Of a stretch of 64,000 nucleotides of DNA, positions 17,585 to 52,382 are shown in pieces. Each line of letters opens with the position of its first letter. Within the stretch, counting starts at the first letter, position 1. The stretch covers positions 124,001-188,000 of IMG/VR virus record IMGVR_UViG_3300002143_000235; one strand, written 5' to 3'. The translations under genes and the position numbers were made by a program. The notes beneath the pieces are model-generated. The model was not told where the DNA came from and searched no databases. It saw nothing but the letters and a program-made list of their open reading frames with translations.

Positions 17585-17963
17585 GGGGGTGACCGATTTT
17601 GATTTGCATTTGATATGTAAATAAGCATGTGGTGATAGTATAATTTCACCTTAAAAAGAATACACAACAATAAACGCAAACACTAAAAATTCTGCAGCTT
17701 TCGCACAGATCGCAGCAGACCTTGGAGCAAATGCAGTTACGACTGTAAACGATACGGCTGATATCGTTGAATTTGCAGCCTAAGGTACTCCGAAAGGACT
17801 TAACACAGCACAAGAGGTTCTGACACGCCTGAACAAATGTGTCAACAAAGTTTTGTATGTCTTCACAAGACATTCTATTTGGTCCGCAAAGAAAAGTGGA
17901 ATAAACATGTAGAAGGTTTATCCTATTGCTGTAAAGATCGGGGTTTGATTCCCCGCACCTCCA
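17585..17963 (+). ncRNA. ssrA: tmRNA
   Basis: 5' GGGGGTG pairs with 3' CACCTCC-A (G3:U70). T-arm CGGGG-TTTGATT-CCCCG and GCATG/CATGT helix. Tag ORF 17676-17783 starts GCA after ATAAAC and ends EFAA*. Confidence 0.93.
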
Positions 17964-17964
17964 C

Positions 17965-17996
17965 AAAAAAGGCTTCAAATTCTTGAAGCCTTTTTT
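17965..17996 (+). terminator. Terminator after tmRNA
   Basis: AAAAAAGGCTTCAA-ATTC-TTGAAGCCTTTTTT. Confidence 0.85.
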
Positions 17997-26420: not shown

Positions 26421-26501
26421 TGTGAGTGAGAGAAGCTGGTCACTTGTTGTTCGTATGGGTTCAGAAACCAAAGATCATCGGTTCGAATCCGACACTCACT
26501 A
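26421..26501 (+). tRNA. Atypical tRNA, anticodon CAG (Leu?), possibly degenerate
   Basis: Acceptor TGTGAGT/ACTCACT with a 1:72 mismatch, expanded D region, weak stem ATGGG-TT CAG AA-ACCAA, short variable loop and a good T-arm. Confidence 0.55.
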
Positions 26502-27757: not shown

Positions 27758-27831
27758 AGCTACATAGCCCAATTGGAAGAGGCAATAGATTTAGAATCTA
27801 TATAGTGTGGGTTCGAGTCCCACTGTGGCTA
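27758..27831 (+). tRNA. tRNA-Leu(TAG) with short variable loop
   Basis: ATAGA-TT TAG AA-TCTAT with a 5-nt variable region. Confidence 0.85.
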
Positions 27832-27835
27832 CAAC

Positions 27836-27918
27836 GGCAGGTGAGATGTATTATTCTCTGAAAAGTTAGACTGCAACAGACTGTTGAGAAGCAGTGGCAT
27901 TGTTGGTGTTAGCCCAAC
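27836..27918 (+). ncRNA. tRNA-like structured element (T-arm-like hairpin)
   Basis: GATGT/GCATT helix enclosing an ACTGTT-GAGA-AGCAGT hairpin, then GTTGG-TGTTAGC-CCAAC. Confidence 0.4.
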
Positions 27919-27969
27919 TAGGGAAAAGTCCCCGAATGAGAGTTCCTTTCACGCTGGTGGTAAACGTGT

Positions 27970-28054
27970 TTTATGTAAAAGCGATCAGTTTGACTGAGTA
28001 TAAAAACGTCTAGCACAGTTGAAAGATAAGACGTTCTAATTGTTTTTACATAAA
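27970..28054 (+). ncRNA. Unclassified stem-closed RNA (about 85 nt)
   Basis: 16-bp closing helix TTTATGTAAAAGCGAT/ATTGTTTTTACATAAA, with internal TCAGT/ACTGA and AACGTCT/AGACGTT. Confidence 0.5.
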
Positions 28055-28059
28055 TAAAT

Positions 28060-28136
28060 GCTTCGTTATACCCTCATGCTTATACCATGTAGAAAGGTTA
28101 GTCTGGTTCACGTTGGTTCAAATCCAACACGAAGTA
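28060..28136 (+). ncRNA. tRNA-like RNA with rearranged arms, TAT anticodon-like loop
   Basis: Acceptor GCTTCGT/ACGAAGT-A and canonical T-arm. The CATG-CT TAT AC-CATG hairpin precedes a D-loop-like AGTCTGGT. Confidence 0.6.
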
Positions 28137-28146
28137 CAAGCATAAA

Positions 28147-28171
28147 GATGGTTCGACTCCATCCAGGCCTA
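28147..28171 (+). pseudogene. Orphan tRNA 3' fragment (T-arm plus acceptor strand)
   Basis: GATGG-TTCGACT-CCATC-CAGGCCT-A with no matching 5' half nearby. Confidence 0.6.
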
Positions 28172-28188
28172 CAAATAAAGAATTGAAA

Positions 28189-31455: not shown

Positions 31456-31489
31456 TGTTTAATTGAAATATTATACCTATATTTACAGT

Positions 31490-32614
31490 ATGAAAATTCT
31501 ATCAAAAGAACAAGCATCGACAAAATTGAAAGGTATTTTACCTGTAGACATTCAGATTCTAGCAAACGCATTTCAGCTTGCTAGTTTTGATTTGTTCTTG
31601 GTTGGTGGTTGTATACGTGATGCATTTATGGACAAAGCACCAAAAGATTTCGATGTTTGTACAAATGCAATGCCTGAGCAAGTAATGGAAATTCTTAAAG
31701 CAAATGCAATTAACTTCCAACTTCAAGGTGAAGCATTTGGTGTTGTTGTTGCGAGAATGTCTGAGGATATAGAAATTGCCACATTTCGCACGGATATTTC
31801 AGGAGGAACTGGTAAAAATTCAGACGATAGTGTTGTATTAGGGGTTACTATTGAAGAAGACGTTGCACGACGTGATCTTACGATAAATGCACTCTTTATG
31901 AATTTGCAGACTGGTGAGATTATTGATCTTGTTGGTGGTATTGATGATTTAAATAATGGTATCGTTCGAACTGTTGGACATCCATCTGAACGTTTTGCAG
32001 AAGACAATCTTCGTAAATTACGTGCTGTTGTTAGAACTGTTAAAACAAATTTTCAATTTGAAGAAAATACTTTTAATTCTATTAAAAATGATCCATCTCT
32101 AAATGTGTCAAAAGAAAGAATCATTATAGAATTATTTAAAATAGATTTCAATTTTGATATTTTACATGATTTATTATTTTCAAGTAATTTAATTTTTGAA
32201 ATTTTACCTGATCTTGATATTACTAATGATACAAATAAACCGATTATATCATTGGATTCAATGTTTGCTATTATTCTTCAAAATGAAAATCTAAAGAATT
32301 TAAATAATAAATTAAACAATTTAAATTTTCCTTGCACATTATCTAATAATATTTGTTTTTTAATTAAATCTATGAAAACTGATTTAACTGAAATTAATCC
32401 CTTTCACTTTTCAAAGGATCGCAAAAAAACAAAATTAACAGTTGATGAATTAATTTTATTTTTTGATAATGATCAAAACATTATTGAATTAATAAATTTT
32501 AAAATAAAACCAGAATTGTCTCAAGAATTAATGGATCAAGGTTTTAAAGGAAAAGATTTAGGTTTGGCTATTGAATTATTTTGTTTTGAGAATCGCACAA
32601 ATATTTTGAAATAA
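31490..32614 (+). CDS. cca: Class II tRNA nucleotidyltransferase (CCA-adding enzyme)
   Basis: LVGGCIRD, KDFDVCT, EIATFR, EDVARRDLTINAL and RFAEDNLRKLRA. Confidence 0.88.
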   Translation: MKILSKEQASTKLKGILPVDIQILANAFQLASFDLFLVGGCIRDAFMDKAPKDFDVCTNAMPEQVMEILKANAINFQLQGEAFGVVVARMSEDIEIATFRTDISGGTGKNSDDSVVLGVTIEEDVARRDLTINALFMNLQTGEIIDLVGGIDDLNNGIVRTVGHPSERFAEDNLRKLRAVVRTVKTNFQFEENTFNSIKNDPSLNVSKERIIIELFKIDFNFDILHDLLFSSNLIFEILPDLDITNDTNKPIISLDSMFAIILQNENLKNLNNKLNNLNFPCTLSNNICFLIKSMKTDLTEINPFHFSKDRKKTKLTVDELILFFDNDQNIIELINFKIKPELSQELMDQGFKGKDLGLAIELFCFENRTNILK

Positions 32615-50720: not shown

Positions 50721-52382
50721 ATGGACAAGAGTCTCAAATTTTTTTTAGGAATTGACAAAGCTCCAGTCAATCGTGATACAAAGACAAATACTGGTTTGTC
50801 TACACAGACTGTAGAAGGTGATGTGATTATAAATTACTTTGATCCAGCAGATCCAACTCGTACAATTACGCGTACGGAAAAGAAACCATACAAATACGAT
50901 GCGCTTGCATCTGAACAAAATCCAGGTCAATTTATTTCATACCTTGGTAATTCTGCTCAAAATGATGTTCAGCCATTTGCTATTAACCCAGAAAATCAAT
51001 CAGATATAGATTTAGAATCTATTATAATTTGGTCACAACAAAATTATCCAAGTATGGCACTTCATCCAAAACATATTGCATACTTGGATAAATTTAGAAC
51101 AATGCCAGCCAACCGTTTCATTGTATTAAGACGATTCAAAGGTCCTTGTAGACACAATCTTTTTGCTGCTAAAAAATCAAAACCAATGTCAACTATGGTT
51201 GGTTATTACGATTTTGAAAATATGCCAATGAAGATATCATTTAACGAGAAATGGAAACAGTTTGATACAACATTTATGTCTATTATTCAGGATGTTGTAG
51301 GTATTCAATTCGATACTATTCCAGGTGTAGGTGCTCTTTTTTCTAAAGCAGCAACTTCACCACTTGGTCAAGATCTTTTATATCTTGTTGGTCAACGTCT
51401 TGGTTTTATTACTCCAGGAGATATGCCTTATGGTGATCCAAACCTTATTCATGATGCAGCAATGCGTGATGTTTCTGGTGAAACTTTATCAACAGGTCTT
51501 GAATCAGAAATTACTGTAGATTTTGAAACAACTTATGTAATGCGCGAAATTTTAGGTATTGATGGTAAAGCTGCCATGCTTGATATTCTTGCAAATATAA
51601 CAACAATGGCAACAGGTAAAGCGCGTTTTGTATCTGGTAATATTGGGCCACTTAATTCACTTCTTAAGTCACTTGAATCCGGAAGTATTGAGGGTATTGT
51701 TAATTCATTTAAAGAAGCTTTGATGGCTGTTGTAAATAGTTTAAGTGATAAAGAAAAAACTACTAAAGAAGAAGCAGCAAAAGCATCAGATCGATCTCTA
51801 GCACAAAAGGGTGTTGATAACGCATTTTCACCACTCGATCAGTTTCTTGCTCAAGGTAAAGAAGTTGTATCACAAGTTATTCGTAATAGGTATTCAAGAT
51901 ACAAATGGAAATTACGTGGAGCAGTTGGTGCAATGACTGGAGCACCAACTGCTCCTTGGCATATATCTATTGGTAATCCAAAATTTCCATGGTTTGTATG
52001 TGGTAACATGGTATTAGAATCATGTGAACTTATTCCAGAAGGAGAACTTGGATACAACGATATGTTTGATAGATTAACTGTGAAAATAAAACTACGTTCA
52101 GGTCGTGTTATGGGTGGTGAAGAAATTGAAACATTATTTAATGCTGGAACTGGTAGAATTTATGATACACCTGAAAAAGTTATTCAATATGTTGTACCAG
52201 AGGGAACAACAGTTAATGTACCAAATGATGGCGGTGATATTACATTTACACAAGGATCTAAAGAAGATATTACAAATGCACCAGTTACACCTGAATCATT
52301 AAATCAATTACCAGATGGTGCAGCAACAAATTTTTCAATTAACAACGTAACTGAACCAGTTGGTCCACCAATAGCACCATAA
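50721..52382 (+). CDS. Putative baseplate/tail-tube initiator protein
   Basis: PWHISIGNP..P.F.CGNMV...ELGYND...L.V.IKL..GR, directly before the gp53-like gene. Confidence 0.55.
   Translation: MDKSLKFFLGIDKAPVNRDTKTNTGLSTQTVEGDVIINYFDPADPTRTITRTEKKPYKYDALASEQNPGQFISYLGNSAQNDVQPFAINPENQSDIDLESIIIWSQQNYPSMALHPKHIAYLDKFRTMPANRFIVLRRFKGPCRHNLFAAKKSKPMSTMVGYYDFENMPMKISFNEKWKQFDTTFMSIIQDVVGIQFDTIPGVGALFSKAATSPLGQDLLYLVGQRLGFITPGDMPYGDPNLIHDAAMRDVSGETLSTGLESEITVDFETTYVMREILGIDGKAAMLDILANITTMATGKARFVSGNIGPLNSLLKSLESGSIEGIVNSFKEALMAVVNSLSDKEKTTKEEAAKASDRSLAQKGVDNAFSPLDQFLAQGKEVVSQVIRNRYSRYKWKLRGAVGAMTGAPTAPWHISIGNPKFPWFVCGNMVLESCELIPEGELGYNDMFDRLTVKIKLRSGRVMGGEEIETLFNAGTGRIYDTPEKVIQYVVPEGTTVNVPNDGGDITFTQGSKEDITNAPVTPESLNQLPDGAATNFSINNVTEPVGPPIAP

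Follow-up and report, generated by a model that had tools for sequence, protein, structure and literature searches.

[quoted passage not shown] This question is raised by a 77-base element in a giant phage, at positions 28060–28136 (+) of the analyzed window. The window is a 64,000-nucleotide stretch, bases 124001–188000 of the 313.7-kb IMG/VR virus record IMGVR_UViG_3300002143_000235, which is estimated to be 80% complete. A first-pass annotation made from the sequence alone had described a tRNA-like RNA with a good acceptor stem and a canonical T arm, in which the anticodon hairpin follows almost directly after the 5′ acceptor strand and a D-loop-like segment takes the place of the variable region. 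It had proposed either a topologically rearranged tRNA, with a UAU anticodon that would read AUA without lysidine, or a decoy for anticodon nucleases. We therefore examined the element and its homologues, and conclude that it is most likely a functional tRNA-Ile(UAU) with a rewired D region, although its function is inferred from sequence comparison alone.

Anatomy of the element

Inspection of the sequence confirmed the described arrangement to the base. The acceptor stem is formed by GCTTCGT (28060–28066) and ACGAAGT (28129–28135), giving 7 bp with G1–U72 as a wobble, and is followed by the unpaired discriminator A73 (28136). No CCA is encoded, the next bases being CAA. The 5′ acceptor strand is followed by a TAT connector (28067–28069), in which U8 and A9 match the canonical positions 8 and 9 and U10 faces U40 (28099). 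Next comes ACC (28070–28072), the 5′ strand of a 3-bp D-like helix whose 3′ strand is GGT (28096–28098). This helix encloses the anticodon arm (28073–28091), which consists of C14, a U15·U31 mismatch, the hairpin CATG-CTTATAC-CATG (28075–28089), and then U and A. The hairpin starts 8 nt after the acceptor strand and has a canonical 7-nt loop with U33, the anticodon TAT (28081–28083) and the purine A37. A GAAA bulge (28092–28095) separates the anticodon stem from the 3′ strand of the D-like helix. The D-loop-like segment TAGTCTGGTTCAC (28099–28111) lies directly before the T arm GTTGG-TTCAAAT-CCAAC (28112–28128), which has the canonical T54, T55, C56, R57 and A58.

Standard tRNA finders reject the element. 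ARAGORN did not call it at default or lowered thresholds, nor with introns or in the mitochondrial modes (-mt and -mtx), and at low thresholds returned only implausible overlapping candidates. The Rfam tRNA model RF00005 aligned exactly 28060–28136 at 27.0 bits, below the gathering score of 29, by deleting the D arm and placing an 18-nt insertion in the variable region. Two relatives, from Streptomyces phage Jay2Jay and Kehishuvirus ‘tikkala’, scored 30.8 and 24.5 bits, respectively. No other Rfam family fitted the element. Folding of the single sequence was not significant (z = −1.16) and gave an alternative rod-like fold that the comparative data did not support. The support for the structure comes from comparison with homologues and not from folding energy.

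The first-pass annotation had also pointed to an ATA codon in a leader peptide. This argument is an artefact. The 42-codon ORF at 28058–28186 (+) simply reads through the tRNA gene, its ATA codon is the anticodon itself, and it is almost certainly spurious.

A family with covarying helices

To test whether the layout is unique to this phage, IMG/VR was scanned with sequence patterns. A pattern built on the anticodon hairpin and the T loop found 10 viral contigs whose acceptor, T and ACC/GGT segments differed in a compensatory way. A pattern independent of the anticodon hairpin found the same layout with GAU and CAU anticodons. A third pattern, which left the anticodon and all stems free, gave at least 135 good hits, 103 of them distinct and all 76–78 nt long. 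These patterns fixed TAT, GAAA, U33 and TAR..TGG, and the hits were filtered for acceptor and T-stem pairing, so that the invariance of some positions is circular. The enclosing helix, the anticodon stem, the R15/Y48-like pair, A35, A37, C50-A51, the T-loop bases and A73 were not imposed.

Absence of covariation among homologues had been named beforehand as a finding that would speak against the structure. In contrast, covariation was found in all four helices. On the alignment of the 103 distinct sequences (A1), RNAalifold independently predicted the acceptor stem, the T stem, the anticodon stem and the 3-bp helix between columns 11–13 and 37–39. Of all helix cells 97.2% were paired, against 61% in shuffles (0 of 500 shuffles reached the observed value), and sliding the partners dropped this to 37–45%. 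Since many of the sequences are related, these cell counts overstate the number of independent events. Acceptor cells were 95.7% paired with compensatory changes in all 7 pairs, T-stem cells were 96.9% paired with covariation in four of the 5 pairs, and the four anticodon-stem pairs covaried and were 99.3% paired. The enclosing helix was 100% paired, and all three of its pairs showed double changes. The first anticodon-stem pair is a near-invariant U·U, and recurrent U·U mismatches were seen at the sixth acceptor pair (columns 6/72, 21 of 103) and the second T-stem pair (columns 55/69, 15 of 103). A35, A37, C50-A51 and A73 (103 of 103) were invariant, and the T loop was canonical. The TAT connector and the GAAA bulge were invariant as well, but both had been required by the pattern.

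The segment UAGUCUGGUUCAC (28099–28111) carries by sequence the inferred equivalents of A14 (28100), R15 (28101), G18 and G19 (28105–28106), U20 (28107) and Y48 (28111), and U8 is present in the connector, but the segment lies at a non-canonical place in the chain and the tertiary contacts are inferred. The purine after UA and the last base before the T stem covaried as A–U in 62 sequences, G–C in 32, G–U in 2 and other combinations in 7, which is the behaviour of the Levitt 15–48 pair. In an unbiased mutual-information scan the top 19 column pairs were exactly the 18 variable helix pairs and this additional pair, which ranked 18th. A covariance model built from A1 (R1) scored the element at 79.4 bits (E 6e-19 in the window), while the canonical tRNAs of the same phage scored 24 bits or less. 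Hence the element is far beyond chance.

Anticodons and isotype

In the set with U after the GG of the D-loop-like segment, the anticodons were UAU 64, GAU 23, CAU 13 and UAC 1. We initially read this as an Ile-specific fold. However, the pattern had required U after the GG, and the idea was abandoned when covariance-model hits of intermediate score showed variants of the same layout with Arg anticodons. A scan for TAATTGGA placed 5–12 nt before a T arm gave about 60 rewired tRNAs with the anticodons UCU 35, ACG 14, UCG 6 and CCU 3, plus 2 GAU. A scan of the GAAA layout with any base but U after the GG gave Arg anticodons in 63 of 66 sequences with A at this position, and CAU or GAU with C or G. 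Several members of this sister family (loci L288, L290, L305, L261 and L220 of our collection and about 60 further loci, with the anticodons UCU, ACG, CCU, UCG and GCG) share the exact TAT-NNN-CT...GAAA-NNN-TAATTGG layout, while others have different junction sequences. In the Arg-type set the enclosing helix was fully paired in 63 of 63, with 14 different triplet pairs, and 58 of 63 have TAT although it was not required. The discriminator was G in 36, A in 16 and U in 11, that is G or A in 52 of 63.

The intermediate hits also revealed a second rewired tRNA-Ile(GAU) subtype with a UAA-CC connector, a 5-bp anticodon stem and a GG-UAA(N)GGUUG(N)AAAU segment, at loci L026 4973–5049 (−), L045 11632–11708 (+), L105 2956–3032 (+), L160 4553–4629 (+) and L098 65–142 (−). 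It scored only 32–52 bits with R1.

The bacterial identity sets comprise A/G73, A20, C35 and U/G36 for Arg, and A73, U20, A35, U36, A37 and A38 for Ile (PMC9976931). The element carries A73, A35, U36, A37 and U at the position-20 equivalent, and the Arg-type relatives carry A at that position, the ArgRS determinant A20. So the base after the GG behaves like position 20 of a real D loop read by the cognate synthetase. This is the strongest argument that the relocated segment is a working D loop and that these RNAs are aminoacylated, which remains inferred. In contrast, the Ile identity pairs C4–G69, U12–A23 and C29–G41 are absent. The element has U4–A69 and A29–U41, and the middle pair of the D-like helix is C–G. 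These pairs vary across the family, were defined in Escherichia coli, and may not hold in other hosts.

Genomic context and carriers

The element lies inside an array of nine ARAGORN-called tRNAs on the + strand between 26216 and 29716, between tRNA-Leu(UAG) and a 47-codon ORF followed by tRNA-Thr. In 81 of the 135 viral loci a canonical tRNA lies within 200 nt, always on the same strand and at a median gap of 43 nt. ARAGORN calls overlapped only 2 of the 135. Clustering of the ORFs around these loci and Pfam searches revealed no consistently linked protein family. The most frequent neighbouring cluster was seen in only 25 of 135 loci, and the top clusters were HTH or HNH homing-endonuclease-like genes, besides unrelated ORFs.

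Cultured carriers include about 78 Streptomyces phages of the Jay2Jay group, in nearly all of which the gene is not annotated. In Jay2Jay itself (KM652554) it lies at 75237–75313. One record, Streptomyces phage EGole (MK494112.1, 75265–75341), annotates the rewired tRNA-Ile(GAU) as tRNA-Leu reading UUA with exactly the same 77-nt ends, presumably by taking the D-loop-like UUAAU as the anticodon loop. In the crAss-like Kehishuvirus ‘tikkala’ (OQ198717, 95577–95653) the gene fills the 90-nt gap between the annotated tRNA-Trp and tRNA-Met genes. Further carriers are uncultured phage cr130_1, bajarodcaudo virus 1 and a 462-kb uncultured phage. A scan of one genome per prokaryotic species gave about 33 good hits. 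Ohtaekwangia, Chryseolinea and Chryseosolibacter isolates (Cytophagales) each carry a single copy inside a chromosomal tRNA array with conserved flanking genes. Truncated copies of the Cytophagales rewired tRNA-Ile(UAU) were seen in MAGs of Chryseolinea sp. and a Bacteroidetes bacterium (loci L145 and L170), where the sequence diverges after the 5′ strand of the T stem into ...CCCGATAGCTATCGG, as at the edge of an inserted element.

The rewired genes usually carry an Ile anticodon that the neighbouring canonical tRNA-Ile lacks. Of 37 viral loci with a canonical tRNA-Ile nearby, 32 have a different Ile-box anticodon on the rewired gene: rewired UAU with canonical GAU (16 loci), rewired GAU with canonical UAU (11), rewired CAU with canonical GAU (4) and rewired UAC with canonical GAU (1). 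In the phage studied here both canonical tRNA-Ile genes are GAU and the rewired one is the only UAU, while in ‘tikkala’ the only GAU gene is the rewired one. The phage has 32% GC and uses AUA at 18.2 per 1000 codons, which is 22% of its Ile codons. No TilS or IleRS gene was found in the 80%-complete record. A search for TilS in CPR and other MAGs carrying the gene gave a mixed and uninformative result (3 of 5 have it). An ORF of the tRNA nucleotidyltransferase (CCA-adding) family lies 3.3 kb downstream at 31463–32614 (+) (Pfam PF01743 PolyA_pol head domain, E 4e-34), and its link to this particular tRNA is inferred.

A search of public read data, covering 801 bases, gave only weak matches, all of them metagenome contigs of relatives that carry no information on expression. 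Contigs of close relatives in two public runs (X8 and X9) lack window 28046–28188, a 143-nt module that holds the rewired tRNA and an orphan T arm and that is replaced by 23 other bases. In X9 alone, the stretch 27824–27982 is replaced by 13 bases. The array is modular with cassette-like indels, and the module is dispensable for these relatives.

A rewired tRNA-Ile as the favoured interpretation

We consider it likely that the element encodes a functional elongator tRNA-Ile with anticodon UAU, which would supply the AUA decoder for an AT-rich jumbo phage. The anatomy, the covariation, the isotype-specific identity bases and the genomic context are established by the data, whereas expression, end processing, CCA addition, charging, decoding and the three-dimensional fold are inferred. 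In this view, the gene is transcribed with the surrounding array, the ordinary machinery trims its ends because the acceptor/T-arm half is canonical, CCA is added after transcription, probably by the phage's own enzyme, and the host IleRS charges the product. Reading of AUA by UAU without lysidine, as the first-pass annotation had suggested, is plausible given the AUA usage and the lack of TilS and of any other UAU tRNA in the phage record. However, an unmodified U34 could also misread AUG.

The body of the molecule is not a cloverleaf. The strand that follows positions 8–9 pairs with a strand 3′ of the anticodon arm and not with one 5′ of it, and the D-loop nucleotides follow that 3′ strand and run straight into the T stem. 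In effect, the 5′ half of the D arm (positions 10–21) has moved into the variable region. The following fold is reasoned from canonical tRNA geometry and was not computed. U8 would keep its place opposite the A14 equivalent. U10·U40 and the three Watson–Crick pairs would make a 4-layer D-like stem continuous with the anticodon stem, its 5′ strand occupying the geometric place of canonical 22–25 and its 3′ strand that of 10–13. C14 with N32 or G33 would take the place of the 26–44 layer, so that the limb would have about 10 stacked layers, the canonical number by our own count with one junction layer assumed. The relocated D loop could then still make the U8–A14, R15–Y48 and G18G19/T-loop contacts, and the molecule would reach the usual L shape with a different chain path. 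The GAAA bulge may fill the helix groove or junction, in place of the contacts that positions 9, 45 and 46 normally make.

Thus the interpretation in the first-pass annotation is supported in part: a topologically rearranged tRNA is strongly supported, while the decoy has no specific support. A decoy, sponge or bait for host anticodon nucleases or other tRNA-targeting defences, or a regulator that binds IleRS or another tRNA-binding protein, appears unlikely. An altered core could let such an RNA be bound yet processed differently from host tRNA, tRNA arrays in phages and mycobacteria have been proposed as anti-defence devices (PMC12803027), and close relatives do without the module. But a decoy for a nuclease that attacks host tRNA should copy the host tRNA rather than depart from it. 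The family keeps A73, A37, a canonical acceptor/T half and isotype-matched position-20 bases for two different synthetases, its anticodons vary within the Ile box so as to complement the canonical neighbours, as decoding and not baiting predicts, and no conserved partner gene lies nearby.

A refinement rather than a replacement of our interpretation is that the RNA decodes like any tRNA-Ile, but that its rewired D region was selected to escape a host tRNA nuclease, a modification enzyme or the phage's own depletion of host tRNA. The layout is found mainly in phages and mobile-looking tRNA arrays, occurs for two isotypes and often coexists with canonical tRNAs of the same amino acid. We nevertheless regard this as unlikely, since no defence or counter-defence gene is consistently linked to it, no tRNA-Ile-specific or tRNA-Arg D-arm-specific nuclease was identified here, and plain decoding is a sufficient explanation for genes that usually fill an anticodon gap rather than duplicate a canonical gene. 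A decayed pseudogene, or a transcript rearranged or spliced into a normal cloverleaf, is very unlikely. Rejection by standard finders and tRNA debris 11 nt downstream would fit decay, but more than 160 distinct sequences across unrelated phages and bacteria keep the layout with compensatory changes in every helix, which pseudogenes do not do. Furthermore, no removal of a single segment and no circular permutation restores the order D stem, D loop, D stem, anticodon arm, as the D-loop-like segment lies 3′ of the anticodon arm while the acceptor ends are in their normal places.

Comparison with described tRNAs

Canonical bacterial and phage tRNA-Ile, including tRNA-Ile(UAU) of TilS-less bacteria such as Mycoplasma mobile, share with the element the 7/5 acceptor and T-arm half, the 7-nt anticodon loop with U33 and A37, the NAU anticodon, A73, U at the position-20 equivalent, a G18G19-like dinucleotide and the overall length of 76–78 nt. 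AUA decoding without TilS has been treated for Bacillus subtilis (PMC3919564). The element differs in having no D hairpin between position 9 and the anticodon arm, in a D-like helix closed across that arm, in D-loop nucleotides located in the variable region and in its score below the Rfam threshold. D-armless mitochondrial tRNAs, e.g. metazoan mt-tRNA-Ser(AGY), and the engineered ‘mini HisT’ (PMC7609411, PMC11551756) likewise have only a short connector after the acceptor stem and no D stem-loop 5′ of the anticodon arm. They are short (about 60–65 nt), lose the D-loop/T-loop contact and adopt Y or boomerang shapes, and as natural molecules are known only in mitochondria. In contrast, the element is 77 nt long, keeps a conserved UARU(U)GGU segment and a Levitt-like covarying pair, and occurs in phages and bacteria.

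Class II tRNAs (Leu, Ser, Tyr, Sec) also have about 20 nt between the anticodon stem and the T stem, which is how the Rfam model aligns the element. In class II tRNAs these nucleotides form their own hairpin and a normal D arm is present, whereas here the long region pairs with 28070–28072, carries the D-loop motifs, and no D arm exists. Allo-tRNAs and 8/4 or 9/3 tRNAs of bacteria and phages (PMC5389517) are likewise non-standard tRNAs found by mining genomes and metagenomes, are present in phage tRNA clusters, and have UAU among their frequent anticodons. They remain cloverleaves with shifted acceptor and T-stem lengths, while the element has a standard 7/5 half and a different D region. In permuted or split tRNA genes (Cyanidioschyzon, Nanoarchaeum) the segment order also departs from the textbook order, but processing restores a canonical mature tRNA. 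Here no simple processing can do so, and the covariation supports the rearranged pairing itself.

We found no prior description of this layout in the literature searched, which did not extend to subscription-only papers. A 2024 paper states that all known bacterial tRNAs are cloverleaves and that natural arm-less tRNAs exist only in mitochondria (PMC11551756). We consider it somewhat more likely than not that the element belongs to a widespread and so far undescribed structural class of elongator tRNAs, with at least Ile and Arg families, in phages and bacterial tRNA arrays, in which the 5′ half of the D arm is relocated into the variable region. This would be the first natural non-cloverleaf tRNA class outside mitochondria, used by the standard translation machinery and systematically missed or misnamed by current annotation pipelines. 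If these RNAs are charged and used, the cloverleaf is not the only chain path to an L-shaped adaptor in bacterial-type translation, and RNase P, the CCA enzyme, IleRS, ArgRS, EF-Tu and the ribosome all tolerate the alternative. The tRNA repertoires of many phages, including crAss-like gut phages and about 80 cultured Streptomyces phages, would then be under-counted or mis-annotated. The class also gives a natural scaffold for tRNA engineering and poses a concrete question as to why phages and mobile tRNA arrays keep such a fold.

Other tRNA-like elements of the phage

An orphan tRNA 3′ half lies 11 nt after the element at 28147–28171 (+), with the T arm GATGG-TTCGACT-CCATC followed by CAGGCCT and A. 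No matching 5′ acceptor strand (AGGCCTG) exists on the + strand of the window, and a BLAST search of the fragment against E. coli genomes found nothing. It may be a remnant of a replaced tRNA or an attachment-site copy. Low-threshold Rfam and T-arm motif scans revealed no other missed tRNA in the array. A tRNA-like remnant at 26422–26500 (+), between two tRNA-Leu genes, reads GTGAGTG ... TCGG-TTCGAAT-CCGA-CACTCAC, that is, a 7-bp acceptor-like pairing and a 4-bp T-like stem. It was not called by ARAGORN and had no Rfam tRNA match even at E up to 1.

The 75-nt tRNA with anticodon UAG (Leu) at 27758–27832 (+) has only a 5-nt variable loop, whereas bacterial tRNA-Leu normally has a long variable arm. 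Similar genes are annotated as tRNA-Leu in Enterococcus, Vibrio and mycobacterial phages. Outside the window, ARAGORN called unusually long tRNAs in the same phage at 51700–51787 (Gln, 88 nt), 76261–76345 (His, 85 nt) and 77015–77102 (Met, 88 nt) of the record, which may carry insertions or non-standard arms. Finally, a phage-encoded tmRNA at 17585–17966 (+) of the window scored 87.1 bits with Rfam RF00023, but was not reported by ARAGORN.
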